Assembly (NCBI RefSeq): GCF_046119375.1
Contig: NW_027362982.1
Coordinates: forward strand, 2,542,001-2,606,000
Length of the DNA stretch: 64,000 bases
Source of the DNA: Phyllobates terribilis
Lineage: Eukaryota
Direction: 5' to 3'
Shown piece by piece: positions 17,180-48,267 of this stretch. Numbering within the stretch: position 1 is the stretch's first letter; each line of letters begins with the position of its first letter. The notes beneath the pieces were generated by a model. That model was not told the origin of the DNA, did not search any database, and was given only the letters and a program-made list of their open reading frames with translations. Position numbers and translations under genes: made by a program.

Positions 17180-17343
17180 TCACCAATAAATAATAACCAG
17201 CTTCCTTGGATCTCATCCTTTGCTGCTGGATGAGCTAGAGCTTTTTCTAGATCTTTCTGAGGACTTTACTCTTCCAGCAAATAGTCTGGCAAGCACTGGC
17301 TCTTTTCCACTTGATTGTTCGTAGTTAGCAGCGGTACATAAAC
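17180..17343 (-). pseudogene. ARMC1L: ARMC1-like exon 7 (last coding exon) with nonsense codon and frameshifting deletion
   Basis: Acceptor ...GCGTAG; VYVPLLTTNNQVEKSQCLPDYLLEE*SPQKDLEKAL...GSWL compared with ARMC1 [36 protein letters not shown]...ASWL; TAA at 17266-17268; terminal YW-TGA out of frame at 17180-17188. Confidence 0.9.
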
Positions 17344-17632
17344 CTACGCAAATGGAGCACAGAAGACAGTGATCACACATGGGAACACTCACTCTGGTTT
17401 TACTAGAGCAACTCGGTGTCCAGGTACCAGACCAAGCAAATGAACTAAAGCAGAAGTCACATGCGATCTTATGGCAACCTGCCTGTGGTTTTTGTCAGTC
17501 AAACCACATCTCTAAAACAGCACAACAGTAAGTTGCACAAATGTTTTTGGCTATGTGAGCAGAGTTGCTGGCTAGCCCAAGCCTAACTGTTTTAGATACC
17601 AAACCATCAGCTAAAAATGTGTTTGAGCGTAC

Positions 17633-17707
17633 CTCTTTACCATAGTCATTCTTGATCACCTGCTGTGCCTTCAGAACTTTTGTTTCTGCGATTGCCGAGG
17701 TTAAACA
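17633..17707 (-). pseudogene. ARMC1L: ARMC1-like exon 6 (75 nt), acceptor reads AA instead of AG
   Basis: CLTSAIAETKVLKAQQVIKNDYGKE compared with ARMC1 [25 protein letters not shown]; GT donor intact; upstream TTCTTGTTCACAA. Confidence 0.92.
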
Positions 17708-17743
17708 TTGTGAACAAGAACAATTGTGTAATACATCTACATT

Positions 17744-20700
17744 TGTGGCACCCTGCTGTTCACAGGTACCACAGGACCCAAAAGGGCGCATGGACGGACT
17801 TCTCCTCAAGAGGCCCTCAATACATACAGACACCTCCACCATTCCACCTCATACCACCAGAGGGAGCCCCGTTAGGGATATATATACTGGAGGGTGGAGT
17901 TAGGTAGTCAGAGTGTGCTGACGCTAGGAGATCAGCGAAGAAGCAGCACGCTGGCTGCTGTGCTGAGGCAAGCCAAGGCCTACAGCACGTGCTGAAGCCT
18001 GAGGGGGCCCCGAGTGTGGCCGGAGGCAAAGCAGAGAGAAGTGATAAGGGGGCAGAGGAGCATCATAGGCTCACCCCAGAATACAAACTTGACACCGGGT
18101 CCGCGCCTACAGGGTCCTCTACACCCAGTAGGGATTACCGGCATACCAGGAGGACTACAAGTACTGGTCGACCTGACGCTAAATCCATTTACAGGACTAG
18201 GAACCACGAAGGCCCCAGCGTCCAGGGATCGTGGTAGCCAGAAGAAAGTCCTACTACCAAGCCGACAGGTGAGAGAGTGAAACAGCATAGAAGCTAGGCC
18301 CAGTTGCAGGCTGGCCAGGAGCTTAGAGAGAGGAAGAAACAGACCAGGAGGCCTTATACCCGCTCACTGGGGAGAGTCCAGAAGTGCACCCTTCCTACCG
18401 AGTACCCTGGACCGTACCTGTTATTTACACCAGTAAAGGTACAAAGTGAATCTCCTGTGTGCGTGTCCGTCATTCCCCGTGATCCGACCTGGCCCCCTCT
18501 CACCTGCATCCCTAGCGAGCTGGACAGTCTGCGCTCTGAAGTGCGTCAGTTAAGTAAAACTCTGACCACTGTCCTGAGCGCCCTGCAGCTACAGACAGAG
18601 CCCGAGACGGATGGAAGGATCCTACTCGCCGACAGCCCTGAGGATGTCCCCTGGATGAGGAGAAGAAGGAGGACAACACCACCCCGTGGGAGGACCAACG
18701 ATCAACGTCGCCCTCCAAGAGAATTCGTCTGCTACTGTTGCCACAAGGCAGGCCACCCCGCATGGACCTGTAATTTAAACGGGCCGAGGGCCGACACCCA
18801 GGAGTAGACCGACCAGGCCCATCAAGCTGGTACTACCGGTTCGTGGGAGGAAGACCTTTCCTGTCCATTGTGCTGGACAGCATCGCAACACCTGCCCTAC
18901 TGGACACCGCATCACAGGTAACCATCATACCTGATGTCCTCTACAAAAGGTACTGGTCCATAGATTAACTCCACCCGCCAAACCCAAACCTCTCTGTGTA
19001 TGCCTCCAATGGCCTTCCTCTTAGCCTAGTCGGGGTTAAGGACGTGACAGTGAAGATGGGAAGAGCAGAACTAAAGGACCAAGGACTGATTGTAGTAGAG
19101 TCTAACCCTGGCGATACAGACTTATATATGATACTTGGTACAAATGTTGTTGTTAATTGTTTGGGAGAAGTGTTGTTCTTACTCCAACAGACGGCTGACA
19201 CTGCCAAACCAGGGAAGAGGAAGGTGCTCCAGAAAGAAATTTGAGCCCTCCTGTACCAGCAACAGGTAAAACTAACAGGTGGTGAAATTGGTATTGTACG
19301 GGTGACAGACCCGATACCCATTGTGATTCCCCCGCTAAGTGAAATGCTGATTTGGTGTAGGGCAGCAATAGGCCTCAGGGGACAGAACTACCAGGCGGTA
19401 GTAGAGCCCGTTAACTCAGAACACAGACCTAACTGCTAGAGGGGTAGTTGATGTGCACAATGGAAGGGTGCCCGTACGCCTCCTAAACTATGGGGGGGGG
19501 GGGGAGAAGTCAAATTGCCACGATATTCCACTGTTGCCAGATTGTATACTGTGAATAATGATGCTATACACACAGTGGAACCCTTGACCCCACCAGACAC
19601 GGTGGAGGACAATGACTCCAAAGCTCAGCTGGAGGAATGGTGTCAGCAGCTCCATGTTGGAACTGACGCCACTCCTGTCCATCAAAAACACGGTGTCTAC
19701 AGGGTGGTTCAGGAATATGAACAGGTGTTTAGTAAACACTCAATTGATTTTGGAAGGGTCAAAGGGGTACAACATCACCTACCCACAGGTAATCATCCAC
19801 CCATCAAGGAGCATTACAGACTCATACCACCAGCGCATTACCTGAAAGCGAAAGAAATGTTGCATGACATGAAAAGGGCAGGGGTAGTAAGGGATAGCTG
19901 TAGCCCCTGGGCAGCTCCCCTGGTCCTGGTCAGGAAGAAGGATGGTATCATGAGGATGTGTGTAGATTACAGGCAAATTAATTGAATAACACATAAAGAT
20001 GCATACCCTTTGCCCTGTATAGAGGAATCCCTGGCGGCACTAAAATCTGCCAATTACTTTTCCACATTGGATCTCACTAGTGGGTACTGGCAAGTCTCTG
20101 TTGCTGAGGAAGACCGGGAGAAGACAGCTTTCACCGCCTCTATGGGATTATGCGAGTTCAACAGTATGCCGTTTGAACTCTGCAACGCCCCTGGAACGTT
20201 CCAGAGGTTGATGGAGTGTTGCTTAGGACACCGGAATTTCGAGACAGTGCTGCTATACCTGGATGACGTTATCGTGTACTCAAAGACGTATGAAGACCAT
20301 CTGAAGCACCTGGCGGAGGTATTTGAAGCATTGTCCCGGTATGGGATGAAACTAAAGCCTTCCAAGTGCCACTTGCTCAAACGGAAGGTTCAGTACCTGG
20401 GGCACATAGTCAGCTCAGAGGGAGTAGCACCAGACCCGGAGAAGGTCACTGCCATCCAGAAGTGGCCTGAACCGAGAAACATCAAGGAAGTACGTCAGTT
20501 TCTGGGACTGGTCGGGTACTACAGGAGGTTCATAAAGGACTACACCAAAAAGGCAGCACCTTTACAAGATCTCCTAGTAGGACAGTCCAAGAGAGGTAAA
20601 AGTCCCCCATTCCAGTGGGGCAAGGAACAGACTGAATCCTTTGCAGTGATGAAGGAGATCCTAACTGGTGAAGAAATCCTGGCTTTCCCTGACTACAGCC

Positions 20701-23700
20701 AACCTTTCCTGTTGTACACCGACGCCAGCAACGAGGGACTGGGAGCTGTGCTATTCCAGAAGCAAAACGGCAGATAAAAGGTAATTGCCTATGCCACCAG
20801 GAAGGTTTGCCCTACTGAGAGGAACCCGGAGAATTACAGTTCCTTCAAGCTGGAGTTCCTGGCCTTGGTCTGGGCTATCACTGAAAGATTCAAGCATTAC
20901 CTAGCCTCAACTAAATTTACAGCCTTTACTGACAACAACCCCTTGACACACCTGGAAACAGCCAGGTTGGGAGCCATGGAACAGCGTTGGGTGGCCAGAT
21001 TGTCGAATTACCAGTTCACAATCAAGTACCGGGCAGGTCACAAGAACACCAATGCTGATGCCTTGTCAAGAATACCCCACCAGTCAGACACCGAGGATGA
21101 AGTGGAGGATCTCGAAGAAATTGAACTACCTGCTTTTCACAGAAATGGAATGGTCCACGAGCAGCGCGCCTCCAGAAGATGTCGTGGTAAGACACTAAAC
21201 CCTTTACCTCATCACAACTGGAAGGAAACCCAGGACAGTGACCCGGTTGTCAGCCTCATCAAAGGACTGATAACCCAAGAAGGTACTCACCTGGAGAAGG
21301 ATGCTCCTCCACAAGCCAAACAACTGTGGAATGAGAGAAGCCGGCTGTTCATCTACAGAGAGAAGCTGTACAGAAGGTATGTCAACCCTAGAACCCATGA
21401 AATGGCGTGGCAGATTGTAGTACCCAGGACAGACATCCAGATGGTGTTAGAGGCCTACCAGGATCAAGCAGGTCACTTTGGCTGGAAGAAGCTGGAAACC
21501 CTGCTGAAGGACCGGTTCTATTGGGTTGGAATGCGGAGCTCCATAGAAAGGTGGTGCCGGAATTGTGGACCCTGTAGCCTCAGAAGGAAAGACTACGGCG
21601 GCCAGAAAGCACCCTTGCAGTCCATCAAAACAACCCAACCACTGGAGATTGTCGCTCTGGATCACGTCAAACTGACACCCAGCAGATAAGGCTATTCCTA
21701 TGCACTGACTATGGTGGATCACTATTCCGGGTTCCTGGTGGTAGCCCCTGTCAAGGATCTGACAGCAGAAACTGCAGCAAGAACGTTCCAAGCCTACTTC
21801 TGCAGACCCCATGGATATCTGGAAAGGTGCTCACAGATCAAGGCCCTGCCTTTTTGAAGTCGAGCTATTTAAAGAATTCTGTCACCTGTATGGATGTAAG
21901 AAGATCAGGGCTACGCCGTATCACCCTCAAACCAACGGTATGTGCAAGAAAATGAACAACATAGACCTGTTGAAAATCTTACCTTTGGAAGAGAGGAACC
22001 AGTGGCCAGATAAACTACCTGACCTGGTAGACCTGTATAACCACATACCTGTGAGTTCTACTCATGAGAGCAAGACCTGGAAAATTGCCCATGAACCTGG
22101 AACTCGGAGTGGTAGAACCTACTGCAGATATGTCCACTGAAGACTGGGACACAAGTCGGCAAGAGCAGTACAGGAAAGTACAGGCCTGTGTCGAAGACAG
22201 TCTAAACCGAGTAAGGGAAAGGCAAGAAGAACAGTACAATAAGCATGCACCAGCAGAACCCTTGGCACCTGGAGAAATAGTGCTAAAGCGGAAGAGAAGA
22301 GGTCACAAGCTCGATGACCAGTGGGAAAGAGAGCCCTACACTGTGTTAAATTGCAGATTTGACAACAGCAAAACCTGCCTGATCAGCAAAAATGGAGGTT
22401 AGACAACCGCAACAGTTTCAAGATATCACTTGAAATTGTGCCCAGGTCTACTGAAGACACAGGGGGAAGAAGTACCTCTTATAGTGACGTGCCCCCAGGG
22501 CCGTGGGTCACTCGGTGCCGGGCCTATAGATGCTGGGGAAGGGAAATGTCACAGTGGCGGCGGCCCGGTCCGTGGCCCAGGGCGGTCAACAAAAAGGGGA
22601 AGGAAAATATTTTTATATGGGATTTGTAGTTCTTAGGAAGTGTTCGTCATGCCACCTGTGGTTTCTGGTAATAGGTACCAGCGCTGCTTCAGACCTCTGG
22701 GGCGGTTGTTAGAGCAGCTGGGTTGGAACGGCTCCCCACAGGTGGAGCGGGCCCCAGGGCAGTGTAGTATTGATGGTGGTGATGCTGGGGCTAGAGGTGC
22801 AGGAGAGATGGCGCAGCAAAAATAACTGACTGAGGCAGTGGAGTGCAGTCATCCGAGTTTACTCACAGTTCTGTTTAAGTTCCTCAGGTACACTGTACGG
22901 GTGTCAGCCTCTTGCGTCGCACTGCGTCTACCAGACAAGGGGTTCAGCACTTTCTCAAGTATATCGGGAACGCTTGACAGAACCCCGCTTTCTTTATGTT
23001 CCTTACTAGACCGACTTCCCGCGCTGGGTCTTCTCCCTCCTGCCCTGCGCTTCCCCACACACAGTCCCGATCGGGTGCTCTGAAGTCCTTCTGGGCAACC
23101 TGGAGTTCCCGTACCTACTTGATGCCCTTCACAGTGACTAGGTTGAGACTGTGGCAACTGCACCATGGAAGTGCAGAAGCCTCCGGTTTTCCAGCCGAGA
23201 CCTAGAGTAACACTGCTGGTCCAGGGACCGGTTCCCTTCTTGTGGCCTGATCCCTCTAACACTTGGCAGATTCGGGCGTACGGGTGCCGTCCTGCACTCA
23301 CCGTACCCCCTGGGATCCCTTCTGTTACCGGAGCCTTCCTCCTCTGCTCCCCTCCTGGGCCTCTTCTTACTAGGCCCCACTCATGGAGCAGAGCTCCTGA
23401 AGAGACTCTGCTCCCCTCTTCTCCTTTCACTGAGTCCACACTCACTAACTAACTCTTTCTAAGATGGCCCCCCTTTATATACACCTCCTCTATAAGTGCT
23501 CCACTGTTCTGCATCCTCCACCTACACCCACTACTGGTACCCTCTCTCTTTGGTTCACCTCACTCCATCCAAGGACAGGGCTCAGCAGAACACAGTGCAT
23601 CTTGCCCTTCCAGCCGGCCTGGAGCAGTGTAGTGTTGAATGCGGGTGTTGGGGTTCCGGGCAGCACTCCCTCCTTACCTGAGAGAAGGAGACACCACATC

Positions 23701-25689
23701 TCTGGGTGAGGTGCAGTACCTCTGTGGCGACTGAACCCTCAGGGGCGCCACACTAGCATTGGAAGAGCCCAAGGAAGATGTAATTCATACAGTTCTAGGA
23801 GACTTCCCTGTGGACTCTCCTCAACTTGATGGAGCAGTTATCATACCAGTGATACACTTCTATCAGCAACCAAAAGAACCTCCACCACAAGTAGAACCTG
23901 TAAGCGCCCTAGAAGAACCTGCTCAGGAACAGGAAGAGTCTCCAGTAAGAGGAGGGTCACCAGTTGAAGCAGAGCCTGAAGGCCCAGTAAACAGTGCACT
24001 TGCCAGTCCTATAGAGAGATTGAGGCATTTCTATAACTTACCTACATGTAGATCTGATAGGTTAGCAGATAGTGCATACACAGACACCAGTATCACTCCA
24101 GTGCTACGAAGATCCACATGCAGCACATAAGGCCAAATCCATGCCAGGTTTAGGGATTAAAATACAAAATGCCTAAAGTGTAAATAGTTACCCAGTTGGG
24201 TATTGCCTACTATTATTTATTGTGTGAACTGAAAAAGTTATATATGTGTGTTGCCCAGTTACCCATAAGGGTATAAAGACTTGTAGGCTGAGGACTGTGA
24301 GCAGCCAAAAACTGTCATGTAAATAGTTGCACTTATTAAAGTGCCCTTATTGATTGTATGCAACAGATGACCACTGAACAAATACCCGTTTGGCGTGGCG
24401 GAAGACGTGGTCCAACGTCGGATCACCTATGCCCTGCAGCCACGCCCAGGGCCTATGTTGAGGGTTTTCGGACAGGTCCCTCATGCTGCTCGATTTGCAT
24501 CTTTATCAGTGAGATGGACACCTGTTTTATGGAACTCACTGTAACTTTAAGAAAATATATTATTGTTATTATAATTGTTATTGTTGTAACCTGTTACAAA
24601 ATGCTTCAGTCCAGGAGTACTGAATTTTACTAGGGGGGAACGTGGCACCCTGCTGTTCACAGGTACCACAGGACCAAAAAGGGTGCATGGACGGACTTCT
24701 CCACAAGAGGCCCTCACTACATACAGACACCTCCACCCTTCCACCTCATACCACCAGAGGGAGCCCTGTTAGGGATATATATACTGGAGGGTGGAGTTAG
24801 GTAGAGAGAGTGTGCTGACGCTAGGAGATCAGTGAAGAAGCAGCACTCTGGCTGCTGTGCTGAGGCAAGCCAAGGCCTACAGTACGTGCTGAAGGCTGAG
24901 GGGGCCCCGAGTGTGGCCGGAGGCAAAGCAGAGAGAAGTGACTAGGGGGCAGAGGAGCATCATAGGCTCACCCCAGAATACAAACTGGACACCGGGTCCG
25001 CACCTACAGGGTCCTCTACACCCAGTAGGGATTACCGGAATACCAGGAGGACTACAAGTACTGGTCGACCTGACGCTAAATCCATTGACAGGACTAGGAA
25101 CCATGAAGGCCCCAGCGTCCAGGGATCGTGGTAGTCAGAAGAAAGTCCTACTACCAAGCTGACAGGTGAGAGAGTGAAACAGCATAGAAGCTAGGCCCAG
25201 TTGCAGGCTGGCCAGGAGCTTAGAGAGAGGAAGAAACAGACCAGGAGGCCTTATACCTGCTCACTGGGGAGAGTCCAGAAGTGCACCCTTCCTACCGAGT
25301 ACCCTGGACCGTACCTGTTATTTACAGCAGGGAAGGTACCAAAGTGAATCTCCTGTGTGCGTGTCCGTCATTCCCCCTGATCCGACCTGGCCCCCTCTCA
25401 CCTGCATCCCTTCCTCCACACTGCCCTGGGGCCCGCTCCACCTGTGGGGAGCCGTTCCAACCCAGCTGCCTTGTCAACCGCCCCAGAGGTCTGCAGCAGC
25501 GCTGGTTACCTATTACCAGAAACCACAGGTGGCGTCACAAGACAAAACTGCTAACCGCTCTATCAAGTGACAAAGCCCCTTTTCAAGAGAGACCCCAGAG
25601 TACGGGCCCGGGAGCCGACTGTCATGACATCCTACAACGAAGGTAAATGCCCGGGTACCGAGTTCTCCCATATCCCCCTGGGCGAGTCA
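17744..25689 (+). mobile_element. Gypsy element G2, TSD CATT; 5' LTR 17744-18513 fused by deletion to late gag; 3' LTR 24641-25689
   Basis: LTR repeats, PPT TTTTACTAGGGGGGAA, protease LLDTAS, RT YLDDVIVY, RNase H and integrase fragments with many disruptions. Confidence 0.95.
22485..23752 (-). mobile_element. Solo LTR (family D) inserted in the G2 integrase tail
   Basis: Reverse complement TGTGGCGCCC...GCACGTCA; TSD ATAG/CTAG; G2 pol sequence resumes after 23756. Confidence 0.88.
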
Positions 25690-25823
25690 CATTCATGGGG
25701 AGAGGGTGCAAAAAGAAAATGACAAATGTTGTAAGAAGATTACTGTAACCATGACGACTTCCTAACACACTTCAGATCTGTAGAAGCTGAAATATTACGT
25801 AAGAGGACATACCCCACTAGAAT

Positions 25824-26345
25824 ATACACTCCCCAACACTGAAATTGCAACACTAAGAAGGAATAGTCGTAGAATTATGGAAATCACAGGATTGACAGAT
25901 ATGTTAATGATATGCAAATTAAACAATGGACAGGACATCACCAGGACCCATGCTGCTCATGCCATTTTGAGAAACCTATGAGGCCTAAACATGCTGCAAT
26001 GGCCTGCAGGGTCTCTGGAAATGTCTTCCATCGATCACATCTGGGATGTCATTGTCTATTACAAAGGGAGCTGCCAGCAGCGGATCTTGATGATTTGAGT
26101 GCCTAAGTGTATTCAGCGTAACAGAACATTTCTTAGACAACCATTAATAACTACCCTGATAGCAGCTGAGGTGTGTAATTGTATTTCTGCATGTGGCACT
26201 CATACTCCATGCTGAATAAATCGAGCGGTTTTGAAAAATTTGCTTCCATTTTGTCAACATGTGCTAATAACATATCTATCCATCCTGTGATTGTCATAAT
26301 TCCATGACTTTTCCATCTTTGTTTTGCAATTTCAATGCTGAATGC
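25824..26345 (+). mobile_element. Old internally deleted Tc1 remnant
   Basis: Decayed LQWPA..IWD-type transposase segment about 25940-26060 between imperfect inverted ends; limits approximate. Confidence 0.55.
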
Positions 26346-29085: not shown

Positions 29086-31303
29086 CAGTAAATCTAGATA
29101 ATTACCTGTTTTAGTTGGCTGAAGAGTGGGTTTTGATTATTGATCCTGGTGTTCCGGGGAGCCACTTGTGTTTGTATGGCTAGAGAGGTAGTTTACTGTG
29201 GGGACTAAATGGTAACATTAGGTATGATCTGGACAAATAGACATGTACCTGACAAAACATATAATACACAAATTGCGATAGGGTAAAATACGTTACCAGT
29301 AAGGAAATGATGATTGATTAGGTGAACTCTATTTGGTTCAGTTCTACCCAACGGCTTGTTCTATGGTAAGTATGACTACTTCGGTCACAGTTTAGTCCAC
29401 AATTTCACTGTGTTAACCTGTAGGGACTTGAAGTGAGTTAATTAGTAAGGGTATATTTATCCCTCGTACTGATGTTATATAGTTTATAAAATATAGAATA
29501 AAATTACCACTGGCTGGTTTAGGTGGTAAATTTAATTATACTAGGGGGGCTGGTTGGCCGGTGTATTTTGGCTGCAGGATTCCTGTTCCTGTTAGTCTGA
29601 GGTACAAACGTTGGTTGGCTATTCAGTTTTAGAATTAGGCATAAGAATTCCCTGTAGTGTCCAGAGAGCCTTTTGGCTCTATAGTGTGTACCATAGGCGG
29701 AAGTTCCTATATAGGCAGCTGTCTTGAAAACATTGGTGAGGCAGTGCGGTACCTTAAGTAGTTATTGATCCGTGGTGTTGCGGCTTTCCTGTTGATGCAG
29801 TGCAGAGGTGTACTGCTGGCAGAGCAAGGCAGGAGCTGGTGGATGTCGGAGTCCAGGCCGGAGACTCCGGCATCAGCGTGCAGCGTCCGGAAGTAGAGTG
29901 GCGTCTGTGTATAAGGACCTGTGTAGCGTCAGGTCTTAGTTGGTCACGTGACCGAAGTTGAAGACGGAGAGCAGGGAGGACCAATGATCCATTACCTATG
30001 GGGTATATGGTGCCCCTCACTTCTTGCTGCAAGTAATACTGACTATATCCACCAGCACCCCTAAACCCCACTTTCTTTCTCTACATAGTTATTAATACAT
30101 ATTTCTAGAAGTGTTTATTTAATAAAAAATAGATCTAGATAGAAAAAAAAAAACCTATTGGAAGATCAGGTTTTCTTTGTCTGTCAGGTCGAATAATGCT
30201 ATTAACCTGCAGGTTAGCAGGTGCCCAGCGGCGGCGAGTCTCCCAGGAGAATATGAACTTTATTTCTCCCCGATACTGGCGACTTTCAGTCATGCAGGTG
30301 TGGCACCCCAGGGGTCTGGTTGCCGCAGTGGTAGAAATACCTTGTCTGAGAGCGAGCATGGGTTTTCCTGGTCAGGAACATTATTGCATGCCACACCTCC
30401 TGCCCCAGTCCAGGGAGGGGAGGAACCTGCCCTTTATAAACTGGAGCTGGGGCGGGGTTAGTCTAGTCTAGTCCAGAGAGAGGGACAGAGCAGCAGCAAG
30501 GAGCTCTGTAGGAGCCAGGAGCTGAAGACCAGGGACTGGAGCCGCGGAGCTCGTCCTGGCAGAAGACGCAGAGAACCGGACACCGGAGTCCGAGGCTGTG
30601 GGGATTCTACACCCAGCAGCAGAAACCACCTGGCAGGGGATTTCAGGTCCTCTGGCCATAGAAAGGCCAGACGCTAAGTCACACGCAAGGGACAGGCACC
30701 GCCATCGAGGAGCGGAAGTCAACAAAGGCCCCAAGTCACCAGCCATACGGGTGAGCACCACACGGTACACTCAGGGACGTGGGCTACTACACGACTACAG
30801 CAGGGTAGCCAGGAAGAGTGCAGTCAGATGGGAAGGCCTACACCTCCACCTGGCCAGGGGGACTCTTGTTCGCTCACAGAGTGACCAGGCCTCTAATGTT
30901 AGCCAGTACTCCCGGCAGGGCCTTCTTCCTTACCAACAGTAAAGACCCTGAACTGCACTGCACGGAGTCATTTCTGCTGCGCCCATGTACCACAACCCTC
31001 ACCATCTACACACGCTGCCCTGAGGCTATACTCCTCCCGTGGGGAGTTATACTACCCTTTGCTGCGCACACAACATCAGCCTCAGCTGTCTGCCCCGCAG
31101 CGGCGGTTTTCAGTGACCGCAATCCATGGGTGGCGTAGTCGGACATTTAAACATTACAAAACCAAGTTAACAGATCCGCCACTGGTTTGACCACCCTGAG
31201 CCACGGGACCGGGTCGCCGCCACGGAGACTACAACCCCTAGCATCACACAGAGATCCGGCTCCGGGTATTCCCCCACACACGGCCCAGGGGGCGCGTCAA
31301 CTT

Positions 31304-31322
31304 TGGCGTAGTCAGCAGGATT
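31304..31322 (+). promoter_or_regulatory. tRNA-Ser primer-binding site of G3
   Basis: TGGCGTAGTCAGCAGGATT, one mismatch to the complement of the vertebrate tRNA-Ser 3' end (...AAUCCUGCCGACUACGCCA). Confidence 0.85.
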
Positions 31323-31688
31323 TTGTGCCCGCAACCACCGGGTACTGCGTGCCTGAAGAAAGACTGTGATACTTACCGTGGTGAAGTTTCCCGCCATCCG
31401 CAACCATTTTCCCACCATCCGCAGCCATTTTCCCGCCATTGGGCGCCATTTCCGGGACGCCGCGCTGGAAGAAGTGGGGCGTGGACACCAAAAGCGCGCG
31501 AGAGCTGAAGCCCCACCTTACGCACTGACGCTGTGCAAGGTCCTGGAAGGAGCCCCGCGGACGCCGACATCACCAGCGCGCGACGCAAAGTCCTCGACCC
31601 CCGACGATCGACTGCGGAGCCGCGGCCTACAGAGAAAAAGCAACGAAAGGTAGGCCACGGTTAACTAGGGGGGAGGAAGACACCAGGA

Positions 31689-32672
31689 ATGGAGGGAGCT
31701 CCCACCGCCAGCGCGGCTGCTGCCGCAGTGATGCCTTTCACGATGCCGTATATCCCAGGAGCGGCATGGTTACCCCAGTACTCAGGGGAGTCGCATACCC
31801 TGAGTGACTTTAAAGAAAGACTGTATAGCCTATTCAAAGTATACCCCCTGTCCGAGGAACAAAAAGTGAGCATCCTGACAGGTCAGTTAATCGGGGCAGC
31901 CCAAAGAGAAGTAAAGTCCTGGTCAGCCAGGGGAAAGGGGACTGTAAAGGAAATACTGGCCCGTCTAAAGGACACTTTTGATACCCGCACCTCAGCAGAG
32001 ATCAAGTTAAAATTTTATGGATGCAAGCAGCGGGCACAAGACAGTATACGGGACTATGCTTTCAATTTGCAGGAGGCCCTGAGAGCCATTAAGCAGGCAG
32101 ACCCTGACAGTGTGCAGAATGAGGATAAGCTGTTGACTGAACAGTTCATTGAGGGTCTACTGTCCAGCGCCCACCGAACCCAGTTGCGTGTTATTTCCCT
32201 CCAGAACCCTGATTTAGACTTTGCGCAGTTTAAAGACAGGGCCATCTGGGTGCTCCGAGAACCGGCACCAGGTGGTTCTGTAACCCACAGGCGCCCTGCT
32301 ATCACCTACCACCAGGAGGCGGCGCCCTTGTCTGCAGAGCCTGTGGGAGCTGATGCACAGGCTTTGGACAAAACCCCGGCTGCAGACCTGCACCATCAGG
32401 TCCAAGAACTGACCAAAAGCGTTGCCGCGCTAACCAGAACTGTGCAGTCTTTACAGGTGTCTTCCCCAGGAAAGATCCAGCCGGCTTCCAGTCTGGAGGA
32501 TGTCCCTTGGAGTCGATGGAGGAGGATCCCATCATCCAGAGGAAGGCCAAGCAACCGCTACGACCAGGACGGACAACCCATCTGCCGCCGCTGCAACCAA
32601 CCAGGACATATGGCAAGGTACTGTCATTTAAACGGGCCCAACATGGGGCAGAGGGCCGACCCCCAGGCATAA
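31689..32672 (+). CDS. G3 Gag (PNMA-like capsid plus CCHC zinc knuckle), open, 327 aa
   Basis: YIPGAAWLPQYSG, LTEQFIEGL, CRRCNQPGHMARYC. Confidence 0.85.
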   Translation: MEGAPTASAAAAAVMPFTMPYIPGAAWLPQYSGESHTLSDFKERLYSLFKVYPLSEEQKVSILTGQLIGAAQREVKSWSARGKGTVKEILARLKDTFDTRTSAEIKLKFYGCKQRAQDSIRDYAFNLQEALRAIKQADPDSVQNEDKLLTEQFIEGLLSSAHRTQLRVISLQNPDLDFAQFKDRAIWVLREPAPGGSVTHRRPAITYHQEAAPLSAEPVGADAQALDKTPAADLHHQVQELTKSVAALTRTVQSLQVSSPGKIQPASSLEDVPWSRWRRIPSSRGRPSNRYDQDGQPICRRCNQPGHMARYCHLNGPNMGQRADPQA

Positions 32673-35600
32673 GATCTTCAGGCCCATCGAGCTGGCGTGA
32701 TAAGTACGTAGGGGGACGACCGGTTTTACCCGTGGTGCTGGATGGCATCCCTATGAGTGCACTACTGGACACCGGGTCACAAGTAACCACCATCCCCTAT
32801 GTGCTCTTTAAGCGGTACTGGAATGACTCGGATATTACCCGCTACCCAGATGACGATTTGAGCATCATTGCCAGCAATGGTCAGCCCGTACCGTAGGTGG
32901 GATTCAAGGAGGTGACCATAAAAATTGGTAAAGTTGGACTGCCAGCGCAAGGACTGATTATTGTGGACATTGACCGTCGTGAAAGCCACCCTAAGATAAC
33001 CTTGGGTACTAATGTTATTGAAAATTGTCTTGTAGAGATAACTGTCATATTACAGCAGGTTGCGATGAACGCCAGCTCCAGCCAGCAGCGTGTCTTACAA
33101 AAAGAGATCAGAGCCCTGATGAAAAGGCAACAGGTAGAACTGTCTGGTGGTGAGATTGGTAGTGTTAGGATGAGCGACCCGTTCCCTATCGCCATGCCCC
33201 CAAAGAGTGAGATGGTGATCTGGTGCCGGACTGCAATCGGGTTAAGAGAAAGGGACTACCAAGCCATGGTAGAACCTGTCTACTCAGACAGTAGGCCCAC
33301 CATTTTGACAGCACGGGGGGTGGTCGATGTACCCCATGGGGGGGTACCCGTCCGCATCCTAAACATTGGGGAAAGAGAAGTATACTTGCCCCGGTATGCC
33401 ACACTAGCCAAATTGTTCACTGTTAACCAAAATGGCCGTGGAACCTTTGCCTCCATCTCAACCAGAGGAGGGTAACGGCTCCAAGAAACAAATGGAGGAC
33501 TGGTGTCAGAAGCTGCATGTGGGCACCAACTCCACTCCCTCACACCAAAAACAGGGAGTCTACCGGGTGGTGCAGGAGTACGAAAGGGTCTTTAGCAAAC
33601 ACTCGCTAGACTTTGGGCAAGTAAAGGGGGTAGAACATCACATCCCCACGGGAGACCATCCACCCATAAAGGAAAGATACCGACCTGTACCCCCTGCACA
33701 CTATCAGAATGCCAAGGGAATGTTGCGAGAAATGAAGGAGGCTGGGTTAATCAGGGACAGCTGTAGCCCCTGGGCAGCTCCACTAGTTCTTGTGAAAAAG
33801 AAAGATGGCACTATGAGAATGTGTGTCGATTACAGAAAGGTCAACCGTATCACACACAAAGATGCGTACCCGTTACCTAGGATAGAGGAATCTTTAGCTG
33901 CATTAAAGTCTGCTAACTTCTTCTCCACTTTGGATCTTACTAGCGTGTACTGGCAGGTTCCTGTAGCAGAGGCTGACAAGGAGAAGACCGCGTTCACCAC
34001 CCCGATGGGTCTCAGCGAATTCAACTGTATGCCGTTCGGGCTCTGCAGCGCACCAGGAGCCTTCCAGCGGCTGATGGAGTGCTGCCTAGGGCACAGGAAT
34101 TTTGAGACGGTCCTGCTCTACCTAGACGATGTCATCGTGTGTTCCAAAACATATGAGGACCATCTGAAACACCTGGCAGAGGTGTTTGACGCCCTGGCAG
34201 GCTACGGCCTAAAGGTGAAACCCTCCAAGTGTCATCTACTGAAACCAAAGGTACAGTACCTGGGACATGTGGTGAGTGCTGACGTAGTAGCTCCAGACCC
34301 TGATAAGATCACAGTGATTAAGGACTGGCCAAAACCCTCCAGCATAAAGGAAGTGCGGCAGTTCCTCGGGTTGGTAGGCTACTACCAAAGATTCATCTCC
34401 GGGTTCACCAAGATGGCAGCCCCTATGCAAGATCTCCTGTTGAGTCAGTCAAAGACCAAGAATCAGAAGCCGCCCTTCAGGTGGGACAAGCAGGAAGAGG
34501 AGTCTTTCCGCCAGCTGAAGATGGCCCTCACGGAGGATGAGGTCCTGGCTTACCCTGATTACGGCCAGCCTTTCATCCTCCACACAGACGCCAGTAACGT
34601 GGGGCTGGGAGCCGTACTATCCCAGATGCAACAGGGCAGAGAACGGCTAATTGCTTATGCCAGCAGAAAGGAATCCTGAAAATTACAGCTCCTTCAAGCT
34701 AGAGTTCCTCGCGGTGGTATGGGCAGTGACAGAGCGCTTTAAACATTACCTTGCCTCTTCCAAGTTCACCGTGTACATGGACAACAACCCGTTGACACAC
34801 CTGGACACTGCAAAACTTGGTGCCCTGGAGCAGAGATGGGTGGCCCGCCTACCCAACTATGAGTTCACCATCAAATACCGGGCGGGACGCACAAATGCGA
34901 ACGCAGACGCCCTGTCCAGGATGCTGAACTTGCCAGACGGGTGGAAGATCCAGAAGAACTGGAAGAGATTGAACTCCCTGCGTTCCACCGTCGTGGGATT
35001 ACCCAGTATTCCCACCGTGTAAGGGACAGGCACTCTGCCACGTTCAATCCCTTACCCCACTACAGCTGGGAGGAGACGCAAGACAGTGACCCAGCCGTCC
35101 ACCTGGTAAAAGAGATGCTGACACAGGCTGGTGCCCGCCTTGACCCAGACGCTCCGGAAGAAACCAAACAGCTGTGGAAGGAGAAGAGTAAACTGTTTCT
35201 CTACAAGGGGAAGCTGTGCCGGAGGATTGTCAACTCCCGGACACATGAGCTGACCTGGCAGGTAGTGGTCCGGAGACGAGACGCGGCTATGGTCCTGGAG
35301 GCATACCACGACGGAGCAGGGCACTTTGGATGGAAGAAGTTGGAGTTCCTGTTGCGTGAACGGTTCTTCTGGGTAGGCATGAGAGGGGCAAGATAGATGG
35401 TGCAGAGACTGCGGCCCGTGCAACCTGAGAAGAAAGGACCATGCCAGCCACAAGACTCCCCTGCAGTCCATCATTACCAAGCAGCCACTAGAACTGGTAG
35501 CCCTGGTCCATGTGAAGCTGGCTCCAAGTAGGTCCGGGTACGTCTACGCCCTCACCATCGTAGACCACTACTCTCGGTTCCTGGTGGTGGTCCCTGTCAA

Positions 35601-36786
35601 GGACTTAACAGCTCAAACAGCAGCCAGAGCCTTCCAGCAGCACTTCTGCCGTCCACACGGGTATCCGGAGCAAGTGTTGACTGATCAAGGTCCAGCCTTC
35701 GAAGCGGAGGTCTTCCAGGAGTTCTGCAACCTCTATGGCTGCAAGAAGATAAGGACAATGCCCCATTACCCCCAAACCAATGGATTGTGTGAGAAGATGA
35801 ACCAGGTGGTGATAGACTTGCTGAAAACGTTGCCCCTGGAAGAATGCAGTCTGTGGCCTGAAAAACTGCCTGATCTGGTGGACTTGTATAACCACATCCC
35901 AGTAAATTCCACCAACTGCACCCCGGCTTACCTAATGAGAGCAAGACCTGGTAAGCTGCCTATTGACCTGGATATGGGAGTCCTGACACCTGAGGACACC
36001 TCGCCAGAGGCAGACTGGGATACAGAACGGCAGCAGCAGTACCGGAAAGTGCAGGAGAGTGTTGAGAGAAGTCTGTCTCAAGCAAGAGAAAGGCAAGAGA
36101 GGACTTACAACCAGCATCCTCCCGCTGCTCCCCTGGTGCCTGGAGAGCAGGTCTTGAAGAGGAAAAAGCGGCTCCATAAGTTGGATGACCAGTGGGAGAA
36201 AGACCTGTACACAGTACTGCCCTCAAGTCATGAAAATCCGAAAGTGTGCATTACCAGTAAGGATGGAGGAGAGACCACAGCCACTGTCTCCAGAGACCAC
36301 CTGAAGAAGTGTCCCGAGCAGCTGCAAAGCACTGATGAAGACCAAGATAGCCCTCAACCCGCAGAGGAAAGGGAAGAAATGGTCAGTACAGTACTCGGAG
36401 AATTTCCCCGGTCCTGGACACAGATTAACAACGCTATTGTGGTACCCGTCCTTACCTTTCTCCAGCCAGCCCCTCAAGGGCCTACAGAAGAGCAAGTAGT
36501 GTTGGGAGAGCAACCGGCCCCGGAGGCAGAAGATTCCATACCAGCAGCCCAGGAGAATCAACCCTCTGCTAGTAGTGAGCCTGCCGTGCCCGTGGTATGC
36601 CAAAGAGTATGCAGAAAGCTGCCCAGCCTACCCGTAACATCCCCAAACACCTGTAGTGCAGACACTAGCGAGCCCACTACACAAGGGGTGGAAATAGGGG
36701 ACCCAGAAAGAACACCACCAGATAGTGTGTTACGTAGGTCAACCAGGAGCACTAGAGGTCAGAGGCCCGCTTGCTGGAGAATCTAG
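32627..36786 (+). pseudogene. G3 pol in the -1 frame; stop at 32894-32896 and several frameshifts
   Basis: LLDTGSQVT, YLDDVIVC, HTDASNVGLGAV, VLTDQGPAFE/PQTNGLCE. Confidence 0.93.
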
Positions 36787-38841
36787 AAAAAGAAATGATA
36801 AATACCTGTATTTTGCAAATGTTAAAATGTTTTATGTTTGTTACCCGAATACTAATTATGTTTCTCTAGTTACCTGACAGGGTTTATGGACTGACAGGTT
36901 ATAGACAATGAATAACCGGATCTGTACCTTGTAAATAGTTGCACCTGTTAAGTGCCCCCTTTGTGCCAGACCACAGAACAAAAACCCGTGGAGGTGGCTG
37001 AAGACGTGGTCCAACGCCGGATCATCTATGCCCTGTAGCCACCCCAGGGCCTACGTGGAGGGTTTGGGACGGGTCCCTCAAAATGCATCTTTGGTGACAT
37101 GGACACCTGGTTACGGAAGCGCCGTGACCTATAAAAACTGAACTCCTTGTACATATGTTGTTGTGTTATTGCTTATATATGTTGTTAGAAATGTGTTTAG
37201 TCTCGGAGTACTAAAATTTACTAGGGGGGAATGTGGCACCCCAGGGGTCTGGTTGCCACAGTGGTAGAAATACCATGTCTGAGAGCGAGCATGGGTTTTC
37301 CTGGTCAGGAGCATTATTGCATGCCACACCTCCTGCCCCAGTCCAGGGAGGGAAGGAACCTGCCCTTTATAAACTGGAGCTAGGGCGGGGTTAGTCTAGT
37401 CTAGTCCAGAGAGAGGGACAAAGCAGCAGCAAGGAGCTCTGTAGGAGCAAGTAGCTGAAGACCAGGGACTGGAGACGCGGAGCTCGTCCTGGCAGAAGAC
37501 GCAGAGAACCGGACACCGGAGTCCGAGGCTGTGGGGATTCTACACCCAGCAGCAGAAACCACCTGGCAGGGGATTTCAGGTCCTCTGGCCATAGAAAGCC
37601 CGGAGGCTAAGTCACGCGCAAGGGACCGGCACCGCCATCGAGGAGCGGAAGGCACCAAAGACCCAAGTCACCAGCCCTACGGGTGAGCACCACACGGTAC
37701 ACTCAGGGACGTGGGCTACTACACGACTACAGCAGGGTAGCCAGGAAGAGTGCAGTCAGATGGGAAGGCCTACACCTCCACCTGGCCAGGGGGACTCTTG
37801 TTTGCTCACAGACTGACCAGGCCTCTAATGTTAGCCAGTACTCCCGGCAGGGCCTCCTTCCTTACCAACAGTAAAGACCCTGAACTGCACTGCACGGAGT
37901 CATTTCTGCTGCGCCCATGTACCACAACCCTCACCATCTACACACGCTGCCCTGAGGCTATACTCCTCCCGTGGGGAGTTATACTACCCTCTGCTGCGCA
38001 CACAACATCAGCCTCAGCGGTCTGCCCCGCAGCGGCGGTTTTCAGTGACCGCAATCCACGGGTGGCGTAGTCGGACATTTAAACATTACAAAACCAAGTA
38101 AACAGATCCGCCACTGGTTTGACTACCCTGAGCCACGGGACCGGGTCTCCGCCACGGAGACTACAACCCCTAGCATCACACAGAGACCCGGCTCCGGGTA
38201 TTCCTCCACACACGGCCCAGGGGGCGCGTCACAGGCGTTACTGGAACAATTACAGTCACTACTCACAGCATTAAGAGAGATGGCATATCCCCGTATTCAG
38301 CAATGCATCAGTGCAAAGCTAGTTGTCAGTCAGTGCCGGGGCCTGGACACAGCCACTCCGCTCAGTGCTGTGAGCAGTGACTCATTTCTACTAATACACC
38401 TGCATGACTGAAAGTCCCAGGCTCCTGGGAGAAATAAAGTTACATTTTCTCCTAGGCAAGCACTTTCAGCACTATGGCAGGGAACCTTCATAACAATATT
38501 AACTTGAAGATTAACCCTATAGCTGCAGGTTAATAGCAACACTGGACAAGACAGCTTCCGTAACTAACACTATTCTATCTGTGAACCCTTTCTAGGAAAA
38601 TCCAGTTCATTTCTTGCACCCTTTTAAAAAGTACTTTTTGTCAGATTTACTTTTAAAACCAGATGAAACAGGACACATGATAAAGGCTACAAGAGCAAGC
38701 TCCAGATGGATCATTTACTTTTCACAATAAAAGGTACAGCAAAAGGATAGGCATCCTGTTTTGACAGGTTATTTTTTTTTCCAATTTTGGCGAGGAGAAA
38801 AAAAAAAAAAGAAGTTGAGTGAAGTTTCATAGACTAGGTTG

Positions 38842-39236
38842 TTAAAGGGGTGCTCCAGGAATGTAATGAAATCGCAATCACAATTCAAACACAGCATGTC
38901 CTAGTCACATGTCAGGAAGAGCGAAGAAATCGAGAGAAGAGAATAGAAAGAAAAAAGAAATCTTCTTGGCTGACTGAATACAAAGGATATTCGTATGCAG
39001 TCTCAGTCATCTGTGCTCAGTCAGCTGAAGAGAAGATTTTCTTCTTCTTCAGTCACAGGCTTCCCCTCAGATCATGTAAGTATGTGTGCGTACGATACAG
39101 CTTCTGACAGTTGACACACAGGTCTCAGAAGCAGTGTTTTTTTCAGAGTGCAGCCAGTCCTGACGAGTAGAAAGGGTTGCATTTAAATTATGTGACGGGG
39201 CCATTTTATTACGTTCTTGGAGGAGAACCCCTTTAA
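38842..39236. mobile_element. T2-type MITE with TTAA TSD
   Basis: TTAA-AGGGGTGCTCC...GGAGAACCCCT-TTAA. Confidence 0.75.
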
Positions 39237-39285
39237 ACAGAAGCTTGCTTACTGGATTAACAAGCATCAAGCTTACTCAGATGTA

Positions 39286-41206
39286 CCGTATTTTTCAGAC
39301 CATAAGATGCACTTTTCCCCCCCAAATTTGGGAGGAAAATGGGGGGTGCGACTTATGTTCCAAACGCTGCTTACCTGCGGTGGTGGTGGAGCGAGATAGC
39401 GGGGCCTCCCTCCTTCAAGAACCCGGTGGTGGTGGTGGCAGCAAAGGAGGTGAGATGCTGCGGGTGTCTGGCTGGGGGCAGACGCGGTTTGGACTTGATA
39501 CGGGAAGTGTCTGGCTTTGGGCCCTGTGAGCGGCACAGGTTTCCAGTGTGCACGGTCATCTTCCTGAAGCTGTGATCCGCAGGAAAATGGCCACCCGAGC
39601 CGGCGCATGCGCTGACTTGAAGCTCAGGCAGCCATTTTCATGTAGATAGCAGCTTCAGGAAGATGGCCGCACACACCGGAAACCTGCGCCGCTCACCTGC
39701 CCAAGCCCGCAGCTAGACACTGCCTGCATCCAGTCCATCCCGCACCTTCTCCCAGACAGAAACTCGCAGCATCTCACCTCCTCCTCCTTTGCTGCCGCTG
39801 CCACCACCACCGGTCCCCAGGCAGGCCTCAGTGGCGCGCAGCCACGCCAGATCGCCAAGCCCCGGGCCTCAGCCAGGCCACCAGCCATGGACCGGGTCTC
39901 AGCCAGGCCCCCAGCCATGGACCGGGCCTCAGCCAGGCCCCTAGCTATGGACCGGGCCCCAGACATGGATCGGGCCCCAGCCAGCCACCGGGCCCCAGCC
40001 AGCCACCGGGCCCCAGCCAACTCTTCTGCTGCAGGGCAGTGCAGGGTTGATGGTAATGCTGGGGGTTGTAGTGCAGGAGAGATGGCGCAGCGAAAATAAC
40101 TGACAAAGGCAGTGGAGTGCAGTCATCCGAGTTTACTCACAGTTCTTTTTAGGTTCCTCAGGTACACTGTACGGGTGTCAGCCTCCCGCGTCGCACTGCG
40201 TTTGCCAGACAGGGGTTCAGCACTCTCTCTAGTATATGAGAAGCGCTTAACGGGACCCCATTTTTGTATGTTCCTTTCTTGACCGACTTCCCGCGCTTTG
40301 TCTTCTCCCTCCTGCCCTGCGCCTCGCAAACAAAGTCCCGAACGGGTACTCTGAGATCCCGGACCTACTTGGTGCTCTTTTCGGTGGCTTAGATGAGAGT
40401 ATGGCAACTGCACCTTGGAAGTGCAGAAGCCTCCGGTTTTCTGGCTGAGACGTGGAGTACTCGGCCAGTCCAGGGACCGGTTCCCTTCTTGCGGCCTGAT
40501 CCCTCTGACACCTGGCAGATTCGGGTGTACGGGTGGCCTCCTGCTCCTTCCATACCCCTGGAATCCCTTTCCTTACTGGAGCCTTACTCCTCTGCTCCCC
40601 TCCTGGGCCTTCCTTACTAGACCCCACTATGGAGCAGAGCTCCTGAAGAGACTCTGCTCCCCTCCACTTTCTTGCTTCCTCTCTGACTGAACTGAACGCT
40701 GTTTCTAAGATGGCTTCCCTTTTTATATCTTCCTAAAGTGCTCCCCTGAACTACGTCCTCCACCCACATCCACTACATGGTTCCCCCTCTCTTTGGTTCC
40801 CCCTTCTCCAGCCAGGGACGGGGAAGCAAAACAAGTGCATAAGGCCCTTCCAGCCGGCCTGGAGTAGTGTGGTGTTGAATGCAGGTGTTGGGGTCCCGGG
40901 CAGTACTCCATCCTTACCTGAGAGAAGGAGATACCACACCTCTGGGTGAGGCGCAGTAACTCTGTGGCGACTGAACCCTCAGGGGCGCCACAGAGGGCCC
41001 TGCAATCCAGCTCCACCGCAACTCCCCGCTGCTGGAGCACCGGATTCCTGAAGGACCCTGCCTCCTGTGACCTTCGCTCCACTGCCCCCCAGATAAGATA
41101 CTGTACCTATTCAGACTATAAAACGGACCCCCATCTTATAAAAATATATTTTTTTCTATATTCCACCCCAAAATTTGGGGTGCGTCTTATAGTCCGAAAA
41201 ATATGG
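39286..41206. mobile_element. Tc2-type MITE containing a 30/18-bp minisatellite (39862-40020) and a truncated family-D LTR
   Basis: TA-CCGTATTTTTCAGACCATAAG...CTTATAGTCCGAAAAATATGG-TA. Confidence 0.8.
40031..40992 (-). mobile_element. Family-D LTR fragment, one end missing
   Basis: Colinear with 22740-23752; ends AGGGGCGCCACA. Confidence 0.85.
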
Positions 41207-41428
41207 TATATGCCTCATAATAAATTTGGCACATCTTGTGCTGCAGGTGCGCCAACACAAACTCCAACATTTATGAACTGACTCAAATTTCCGCTACAAT
41301 TTACATCAATCCCTCCCACTAAAACCCACCACACTCTGTTTTATGAAAATTGGTGCGACAGCAGTGTAATTTTTTTTTCTCCACAAAACAGCAATCCCAA
41401 GTTAAAATATTTTTTCATTTTCTCCTAC

Positions 41429-41545
41429 CTCTGTGACCAGGTCTGGCTTCACTCGCACAGTGCACCTTCTGATTGCTGTCTGAAATGTAAAGCTGATGAC
41501 ACCTTTCACCTTTAATAATGTTTCTTAACATAGGTATTTCCTATC
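41429..41545 (-). pseudogene. ARMC1L: ARMC1-like exon 5 (117 nt) with nonsense codon
   Basis: AG/GT flanks; [38 protein letters not shown] compared with ARMC1 [39 protein letters not shown]; TAA at 41525-41527. Confidence 0.95.
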
Positions 41546-41765
41546 CTGAAAGTCCATAGTGGTCACTTCTTCCTACAAAAAAAAAAAAAAAAAAAATTAA
41601 ACAAAATAAATTAGGCAGAATTTTGCAGCTTAATATTTACCTGAATAGAGAGATATTTTAAGCCATTCTTTAAAAAAAAAAATCTTGGACGCCCTTTTAA
41701 AAAGTGGATCGAAGCTATAATAAGTTCTGTGTGCAGTATGGCAATATCAAACAGATGACCCTTAC

Positions 41766-41943
41766 CAGATCATCAAGTCCATGGATGTGGAGTGTTATGG
41801 TTTCGGCTCTTTTGTTTGCACTTGAAATGAAGAACTGTAGGTTGTTTTGCTTGTTCTTGGTTTCTGGTGTAAGCAAGTGACCTGGCACACCTAATGACAC
41901 GTGAATCTGATGGGCGAGTACTTTGCTACGATTATTCATGTCA
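41766..41943 (-). pseudogene. ARMC1L: ARMC1-like exon 4 (178 nt), open
   Basis: TTTTTTCAG acceptor and GTAAGG donor; ...LQFFISSANKRAETITLHIHGLDDL compared with ARMC1 [25 protein letters not shown]. Confidence 0.95.
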
Positions 41944-42029
41944 CTGAAAAAAAATAGAATTTATCCATATATCACAGGAGAGCTCTGTTGTCATCTTGTT
42001 CTGGAAAAGGTCACTATAAAAAGTACTGA

Positions 42030-42372
42030 TTAAAGGGGTTGTATCATCCTCTTTCTTCAGGAGTGCGCCACCTCTCGGCCTCCTAGCTTCCTAGGGAGCA
42101 GTGCTCTTCTGAAGACTGACGGTTCTTTCCAGCGGCATGACTGAGCAGCTCACCCAAAAAACACACTTTCCGCATTGGAAAAGCCGCCATCAGTGCAGCC
42201 TAGGAAATCGGCCACTGCAGAAGTGGACAATAACCTAGGCGATAAGCTGTAAACTAGAAGGAAAAATCCATCTGTTCTTAACAAAGAGGAAAGTATAAGT
42301 AAATTGCAAAGTTGCCCTGATTTTACAAGCACTTTGCAATATTAACTTGCAAATTTGAGACAACCCCTTTAA
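42030..42372. mobile_element. T2-type MITE with TTAA TSD
   Basis: TTAA-AGGGGTTGT...ACAACCCCT-TTAA. Confidence 0.8.
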
Positions 42373-43123
42373 TAAACATTAAAGAGTTTATTATTATTTG
42401 TCTGGCTGTTTTTTTTCAGGAAAGTTGTGTCCCAAGGTGCAATTTGTTGTGAAACAAAGAAACTGTGCTTTACTTACTGCTGAGTCTTCACCATGGCTCT
42501 TATTTTATTATTTGGAGCACTGACATCACGACGACAATGCTGCAGGAAATCAGTGAGGTCAGCGGCTCATGCTGTCTACAAGGACAAAGCCGCTGAGGTC
42601 ACTGATTGGCTTCAGCACTGCCGACGTGATGACGGCACTGCAGACAATGACAGACACCCGGAGAAGCAGCACTCAGCACTGGATCCTTCGAGGATGCATA
42701 ATACAGTTCGTTTTTATTACAATAAATTGCGTGTAAGGACAACTTTCCTGAAAATGGAAGACCCCTTTAAATATTACAAAATGGAAAATTGTTCTAGATA
42801 CACAACACCCGCTTGTCTAGTGCACACACTAGAGCTAATGGTGGACTACATTTAATTCATGACAATTTGTATGAAAAATATGAAGATCATCAAAAGACTG
42901 GCTACAGAGAGAGTTGTCCAAACAAGGATACATATGCCAAGGCATACAATGCAGTGAGGACTACCCAAAAACACAGGCCCATGTGCCCAGACATCCAGGG
43001 CATTACAGTGACAGCATTTCTGCTGGATGTACACTCACTTTGTACGGACACAACTACTACCAGCTAATATTTCACGACAGCTGTACACAAGCTCAGCCCC
43101 AGCATTACACGCAATGAGTTTAC

Positions 43124-43215
43124 CTGTTCTTAATGTTCTCCAGGCTCACCATCATACCTAGCTCACTCCTCGGTCTTTTACAGTGATTAGGATTTTCACA
43201 CAATTAGTGAATTGC
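43124..43215 (-). pseudogene. ARMC1L: ARMC1-like exon 3 (92 nt) with nonsense codon
   Basis: AG/GT flanks; AIH*LCENPNHCKRPRSELGMMVSLENIKN compared with ARMC1 [30 protein letters not shown]; TAA at 43204-43206. Confidence 0.92.
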
Positions 43216-46391: not shown

Positions 46392-46392
46392 T

Positions 46393-46611: not shown

Positions 46612-46657
<46 letters not shown>
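46393..46657. repeat. (CA)n and (TG)n microsatellite tracts
   Basis: CA-rich tract 46393-46436 and long TG run about 46614-46657. Confidence 0.9.
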
Positions 46658-48180: not shown

Positions 48181-48267
48181 GAGGAAGGAATCCTGTGTCC
48201 GCCATCACCTCTGCAGCTGGAGCTGATCCACCAGCTGTCGGAATACCTGGGAGTGCCCACTGAGCAG
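48181..48267 (+). pseudogene. MTFR2: MTFR2 first coding exon, start codon absent
   Basis: TTGTTTTCCAG acceptor and GTGAGT donor; SPLQLELIHQLSEYLGVPTEQ compared with human MTFR2 [21 protein letters not shown]; Kozak-like CCGCC followed by ATC, not ATG. Confidence 0.75.

Follow-up and report, generated by a model that had tools for sequence, protein, structure and literature searches.

Exons of the armc1l copy and their lesions

The DNA analyzed here (the window) is 64,000 bases long with an N count of 0, and its minus strand carries exons of a damaged copy of armc1l, a paralogue of ARMC1. We consider it highly probable that the locus arose by duplication of armc1l, the MTFR2-linked ARMC1 paralogue, and is an unprocessed copy without function in a genome of the Phyllobates poison-frog lineage. 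An earlier interpretation made from the letters of the window (the sequence-only reading) had proposed five minus-strand exons of 92, 178, 117, 75 and about 164 nt, and all five were recovered. Coding exon 2 (43215-43124, 92 nt) lies between cag and gtaaac, and its translation is 87.5% identical to both armc1-like copies of Phyllobates terribilis. Coding exon 3 (41943-41766, 178 nt, between cag and gtaagg) is free of stops, and is followed by coding exon 4 (41545-41429, 117 nt, between cag and gtagga), coding exon 5 (17707-17633, 75 nt, donor gtacgc) and the last coding exon (17343-17180, preceded by tag and ending in TGA), which has 164 nt compared with 192 in intact frog genes. All four donors are GT, and AG acceptors are present at exons 2, 3, 4 and 6.

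Exon chains solved on genomic loci gave armc1l coding exons of 150/92/181/117/75/192 nt for Xenopus tropicalis and 150/92/175/117/75/192 nt for Dendropsophus ebraccatus. The window series of 92/178/117/75/164 nt has the phases and intron positions of both. The sequence-only reading had given this order and these phases for ARMC1; they do hold for frog armc1l, which was used for the comparison in place of ARMC1 proper. The genes of both frogs have six coding exons and, in their phases and in being divergent to an MTFR-family gene, agree with the window copy; unlike it they are intact, and they span 8 kb (X. tropicalis) and 17 kb (Dendropsophus). Because introns sit at the conserved armc1l positions (four introns between five exons, with GT at every donor), the copy is unprocessed, as had been proposed. 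The intron between exons 4 and 5 measures 23.7 kb in the window; its counterparts measure 2.3 kb (Dendropsophus) and 1.5 kb (X. tropicalis).

The three exons said to carry TAA codons (at 43204, 41525 and 17266) do so, the codons being read at 43206-43204 (exon 2), 41527-41525 (exon 4) and 17268-17266 (last exon), and each differs at a single base from the sense codon found in Dendropsophus and Xenopus. In exon 2 a conserved Tyr is lost (TAC in Dendropsophus, TAT in Xenopus), and this first stop of the copy falls four codons into the exon. The TAA in exon 4 replaces GAA, the Glu being invariant in 26 intact frog proteins, and the TAA in the last exon stands where Dendropsophus and Xenopus have GAA. 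Downstream of this third stop the last exon reads AGC TGG TTA (SWL), followed by the five nucleotides TTATT and then by TAT TGG TGA. Intact frog armc1l genes have 33 nt, or 11 residues, between SW(L/V/I) and YW, so that TTATT represents a net 28-nt deletion. This deletion accounts for the difference between 164 and 192 nt, and the C-terminal tail is deleted and out of frame, in agreement with the sequence-only reading.

Three further defects had not been noticed in that reading: the absence of the first coding exon, a lost splice acceptor at exon 5, and a long terminal repeat (LTR) retrotransposon that ends 37 nt from this acceptor. The acceptor at 17709-17708 is AA rather than AG (gttcacaa/TGTTTA in the window, versus ttttacag/TGTTTA in Xenopus and gtttacag/TGTTTA in Dendropsophus). 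Set against the layout of a functional ARMC1-family protein, the copy is missing residues 1-50, has stops in both the ARM and the HMA-like parts, and carries its tail out of frame. The claim that this copy is dead was thus borne out: its frame has three nonsense codons and is shifted by the tail deletion, one acceptor is destroyed, and there is no first coding exon. Note that there is an in-frame cryptic acceptor 27 nt upstream of exon 4 (exon start 41572). The residues EEVTTMDFQ read from 41572 answer to an EEVTTIDFH insertion in XP_073511241.1, the product of the second P. terribilis copy described below.

The 150-nt first coding exon was not detected in the window by tblastn using five frog N-termini, by an unfiltered profile of 25 frog exon-1 peptides, or by blastn using exon 1 of Dendropsophus, whereas exons 2-6 of Dendropsophus all match. 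One exon-1 relic was considered at 44644-44573 (SDPQNRSYI; hidden Markov model E value 0.07). It was rejected and treated as a chance match, because a copy that differs from its parent by ∼8% should retain ∼90% identity and because the site abuts Tc1/mariner-derived DNA. Where the exon would be expected there is a 17-bp minisatellite (46703-47441; 43.5 copies, Tandem Repeats Finder score 1107) with the consensus CTCTGACTGACGCAGCG, 89% matches, and runs of (AC)n and (TG)n on its flanks. The interval between exon 2 and the promoter block described below is occupied by Tc1/mariner pieces, microsatellites and this minisatellite. The minisatellite also yields long artefactual open reading frames (ORFs) on the minus strand (46239-47564).

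Family assignment, promoter and relationship to the annotated copies

When the stop-free 178-nt exon was searched against 1.8 billion representative proteins, one strong match was obtained, to armadillo repeat-containing protein 1-like of Ranitomeya imitator (E = 7.6e-23, 82% identity). With this R. imitator protein as the query, the matches listed began with some 30 armc1-like proteins of anurans and went on to fish proteins bearing the name “armadillo repeat containing 1, like”; all 120 relatives among them were of the armc1l type. In tblastn, the main armc1-like protein of P. terribilis gave five collinear minus-strand matches in the window (E = 1e-11 to 9e-31), and armc1-like proteins gave no matches in the window beyond these five exons. 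Dendropsophus exons 2-6 matched the window at 76-86% nucleotide identity (blastn, E = 2e-17 to 2e-33). Given five collinear tblastn matches on the same strand together with the Dendropsophus exon matches, chance resemblance can be set aside. Database names, the ranking of best hits and synteny support the assignment of the window copy to the armc1-like lineage, rather than to ARMC1 proper. In domain and structure searches, Pfam gave no ARMC1-specific family for the exon peptides and returned only sub-threshold noise, full armc1-like proteins gave a weak Arm repeat, and a sequence search of PDB gave designed armadillo proteins and no ARMC1 structure. A literature search for armc1l found no papers, and PMC2656531 contains nothing on paralogy.

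The annotation of P. terribilis contains two armc1-like genes. The main copy (XP_073529334.1/XP_073529333.1) is intact and slowly evolving, spans 14 kb and encodes 267 amino acids ending in ...FYW; 663 nt away from it is a divergent neighbour of 436 residues, compared with 402 residues in other frogs. The second copy (XP_073511241.1) encodes 238 amino acids over a span of 60 kb, and no neighbour is called within 10 kb of it. The window copy shares with the main copy its exon order, its head-to-head arrangement with an MTFR-family gene and 185 of 201 residues (92%); unlike the main copy it is without exon 1 and the tail, carries three stops, has lost an acceptor, and extends over ∼31 kb as opposed to 14 kb. 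With XP_073511241.1 it shares 162 of 177 residues. That protein ends in ...DYLLEE at the position of the third TAA of the window, has the same Pro-to-Leu change just before this position, and includes the EEVTT(I/M)DF(H/Q) segment upstream of exon 4. It differs from the window in keeping exon 1 and in having sense codons where the window has its first two TAA codons, and its gene appears to be without the normal exon-4 acceptor, with His in place of the Gln that the window encodes through cAG, and to use the cryptic acceptor instead. The two are 8.5% apart in protein and so do not represent one locus of a single genome. The window copy may be a third armc1l copy of P. terribilis or else the counterpart, in a congener, of the XP_073511241.1 locus.

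For phylogenetic analysis the window peptide was reconstructed with stops written as X, and a maximum-likelihood tree of 34 proteins was computed. The peptide falls within the clade of anuran armc1-like proteins, to which fish proteins named “armadillo repeat containing 1, like” are the outgroup. Anomaloglossus branches first, then Ranitomeya, then the main P. terribilis copy, which is sister to a pair formed by XP_073511241.1 and the window. Supports are 98/94 for this pair and 100/97 for its grouping with the main copy. A topology constrained to unite the main copies of Phyllobates and Ranitomeya is worse by 19.9 log-likelihood units, and the approximately unbiased (AU) test rejects a duplication that predates the split of the two genera (p = 0.008). 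The assignment to the ARMC1-like paralogue made in the sequence-only reading is thus matched by 92% identity to the P. terribilis armc1-like protein and by nesting in the anuran armc1-like clade. Counted in protein, the window lineage has 10 unique changes versus 2 on the main copy (p = 0.039), and its branches are longer; against one another, the window and XP_073511241.1 have 6 unique changes each. These protein-level counts favour a pseudogene in suggesting that constraint may have been relaxed on the window lineage.

Upstream of the missing exon, a block at 47760..48000 (minus strand) aligns with Dendropsophus L002:9200-9460 at 79% column identity (blastn E = 7e-18); in that frog this sequence separates the two genes. 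Within the block, 47896-47861 translates to TCDRFQSQSAAG, 11 of 12 residues being as in the N-terminal extension of isoform X1 of R. variabilis (E = 8e-4). Because the block matches both Dendropsophus intergenic DNA and this isoform extension, it was taken as the shared armc1l/MTFR2 promoter; it includes a CCAAT box and also the 5′ non-coding exon of armc1l. It may be remarked that 79% of columns, with the CCAAT box among them, are alike between a dendrobatid-type sequence and a hylid frog.

Head-to-head with armc1l, an MTFR2-like first coding exon lies on the plus strand at 48205..48267 with the donor gtgagt. It was matched by exon 1 of the X. tropicalis neighbour in tblastn (E = 3e-4), and its DNA aligns without gaps to exon 1 of the Xenopus and Dendropsophus neighbours. 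The family of this neighbour is shown in Xenopus by a Pfam Mito_fiss_reg match in the second exon (E = 7.4e-12). Positions 48205-48207 are TCA where Xenopus and Dendropsophus have ATG, and no stop interrupts the frame back to 48180, where there is an acceptor-like site. Searches by tblastx with the Xenopus and Dendropsophus MTFR regions detected no other MTFR exons in the window, including its remaining 15.7 kb, and a regular-expression search of the window for MTFR2 motifs found nothing. Since the promoter and the MTFR2-like exon are kept, the neighbour that the sequence-only reading named as MTFR2 is real in the form of an MTFR-family exon-1-like sequence that shares its promoter with armc1l as in X. 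tropicalis and Dendropsophus. The Xenopus and Dendropsophus neighbour carries K29, R35 and R39, and this numbering, together with the human MTFR N-termini, suggests MTFR2 rather than MTFR1. The same numbering is reported for human MTFR2 (PMC11980836). In both frogs a conserved ORF (QLVPIWE...HLP; Xenopus L001:4909-4989, Dendropsophus L002:5784-5864, minus strand) lies between MTFR exons 1 and 2; the segment resembles MTFR exon 2 and may be a duplicated alternative MTFR2 exon.

Alternative explanations and proposed history

A true gene loss, in which the window would be the frog's sole armc1l locus decaying in place at the MTFR2-linked site, is suggested by the ancestral head-to-head layout, which is retained with an MTFR2-like exon and promoter. 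Loss of armc1l happened in mammals. We nevertheless regard such a loss as improbable here: the window pairs with the already truncated second copy of P. terribilis, and this pair is sister to the intact gene with the 436-residue neighbour. In addition, one short MTFR2-like exon without ATG is all that was detected of MTFR, and the relatives of the transposons point to Phyllobates, as a gypsy-type pol ORF has its best matches in P. terribilis (86-90%, versus 57-75% in Ranitomeya and Dendrobates). A locus that still matters, either through a regulatory transcript from the kept promoter or through a short tail-less N-terminal product, is somewhat less probable again. The promoter block with its intact CCAAT box and 79% identity to that of a hylid frog, and the RefSeq protein-coding annotation of the tail-less XP_073511241.1, would agree with it. 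However, the start-codon exon is missing and the first stop follows four codons into exon 2; a young duplicate would be expected to keep promoter similarity without selection, and in XP_073511241.1, too, 10 columns that are invariant in 26 frogs have changed.

The remaining alternatives fare worse. Sequencing or assembly errors, or splicing that bypasses the lesions, could hide a live gene, in that every stop is a single-base change and exon 4 has an in-frame cryptic acceptor. Such an account would have to explain six independent defects of differing kinds in five exons in addition to a missing start exon, a stop common to an independently annotated copy, and the excess of unique substitutions, and we consider it very unlikely. 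Descent from ARMC1 proper, or from a processed (retrotransposed) transcript, has no more than general family resemblance in its favour and is extremely unlikely. Four introns at conserved positions, with GT donors and three AG acceptors, speak against retrotransposition, and ARMC1 proper is made unlikely by the 92% identity to an armc1-like protein, by the top fish relatives (all named “like” among the matches listed) and by a neighbouring MTFR-family exon whose Xenopus and Dendropsophus versions have the three residues noted above.

The unprocessed, non-functional duplicate therefore stands as our interpretation, one in which exons, lesions, tree position and synteny were observed directly. 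Several points weigh against it. The tree was built without ARMC1-proper sequences, so that of the earlier placement it is the position in the armc1-like clade that is upheld, and the grouping submitted to the AU test was named only after the tree had been inspected. Gene conversion between copies could draw the duplicates toward the main copy of Phyllobates. The stop common to the window and XP_073511241.1 is deduced from where the XP_073511241.1 protein ends, and the TCA in place of ATG in the MTFR2-like exon may be characteristic of the lineage.

From these results we infer in what order the events occurred, how far the duplicated segment extended, and that function is absent. Since the window pairs with XP_073511241.1, and since that protein ends at the third TAA of the window, we place the duplication within the Phyllobates lineage, with tail loss preceding the other lesions. 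A segment comprising the MTFR2 first coding exon, the bidirectional promoter and the whole of armc1l would have been duplicated after the Phyllobates-Ranitomeya split. The first hit, common to XP_073511241.1 and the window, would be the change of GAA to TAA at codon 239, removing the last 29 residues. By homology with the role of the ARMC1 tail, the truncated copy would already have been useless for the known function, and selection would have been released after this hit and before the later lesions of the window copy. After the split of the duplicates each lineage would have gathered its own damage. In the window copy this would include two further TAA codons, destruction of the exon-5 acceptor, deletion of 28 nt from the already dead tail, loss of the first coding exon in what is now a minisatellite and transposon zone, and the entry of ∼16 kb of LTR retrotransposons into one intron.

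The function referred to is known from experiments on ARMC1, a paralogue different from armc1l. Human ARMC1, of the same family, is built from an armadillo-type helical domain at its N-terminus, an HMA-like domain and, at its C-terminus, a short domain that ends in Trp (PMC11980836). Without its 15 C-terminal residues, or without W282 alone, it does not localize to mitochondria and no longer stabilizes MTFR1, MTFR2 and MTFR1L (PMC11980836). An order of decay in which the tail goes first agrees with this experimentally shown weight of the C-terminal domain. As the codon-239 stop is common to two copies that later diverged by ∼8% in protein, one could also suppose that a tail-less armc1l protein, incapable of docking on mitochondria, was kept for a time in Phyllobates as a cytosolic MTFR2/MIRO decoy and decayed later in the window copy; we give this little credence.

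As an unprocessed pseudogene of a known gene family, the window copy is young, ordinary and of the textbook kind. It is a dead extra duplicate, and armc1l itself is probably not lost from the frog, because the intact parent gene is present in P. terribilis. The window copy cannot give an ARMC1-like protein and could yield at most a non-coding transcript from the kept promoter. Its value is mainly one of annotation, in that it marks a dead copy of a gene, so far unannotated, in a frog genome that is giant and rich in transposons. The annotated second copy calls for a similar warning: with 10 changes at columns invariant in 26 frogs and its C-terminal 29 residues missing, the RefSeq protein-coding model XP_073511241.1 is probably also a pseudogene, and its protein-coding label is doubtful. 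Nothing here should surprise a specialist; the locus is a small case study that documents a lineage-specific duplication of the armc1l-MTFR2 pair, the products of whose paralogues (ARMC1 and the MTFRs) were recently shown to cooperate.

Transposable elements in the window

Four Ty3/gypsy-type LTR retrotransposons together make up roughly half of the window. Two of them, on the plus strand, swell the intron between exons 4 and 5 to its 23.7 kb. The element next to the exon-5 acceptor (17745..25411) was identified by self-megablast and has LTRs at 17745-18513 and 24642-25411 that are 96.5% alike, with gag/pol-like ORFs; the other (30299..38231) has LTRs that are 97.0% alike. The remaining two are at 5171-11002 (LTR pair 91.8% alike) and 54807-62790 (LTR pair 98.3% alike). 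Between the elements at 31.4-36.6 kb and 56.0-61.3 kb the similarity is 79%, and they were therefore regarded as related families.

Three consecutive ORFs in different frames at 52958-54330 (minus strand), all within 50492-54806, were considered as a cold-shock-like host gene, and this candidate was rejected. The last of the three has a weak match to Pfam CSD that is below the cutoff (E = 4.5e-5). Because the ORFs are flanked by two 94%-identical repeats of 480 bp, they were read as part of a transposon.

A LINE-type (long interspersed nuclear element) reverse-transcriptase ORF of 430 residues (15001-16293, minus strand) lies just downstream of the last exon of the pseudogene. An uninterrupted ORF of 319 residues for a Tc1/mariner-type transposase is found at 48649-49608 (minus strand), within the first intron of the MTFR2-like remnant, and related Tc1/mariner pieces are present at 43910-44519, 45446-46036, 994-1614 and 11691-12357.

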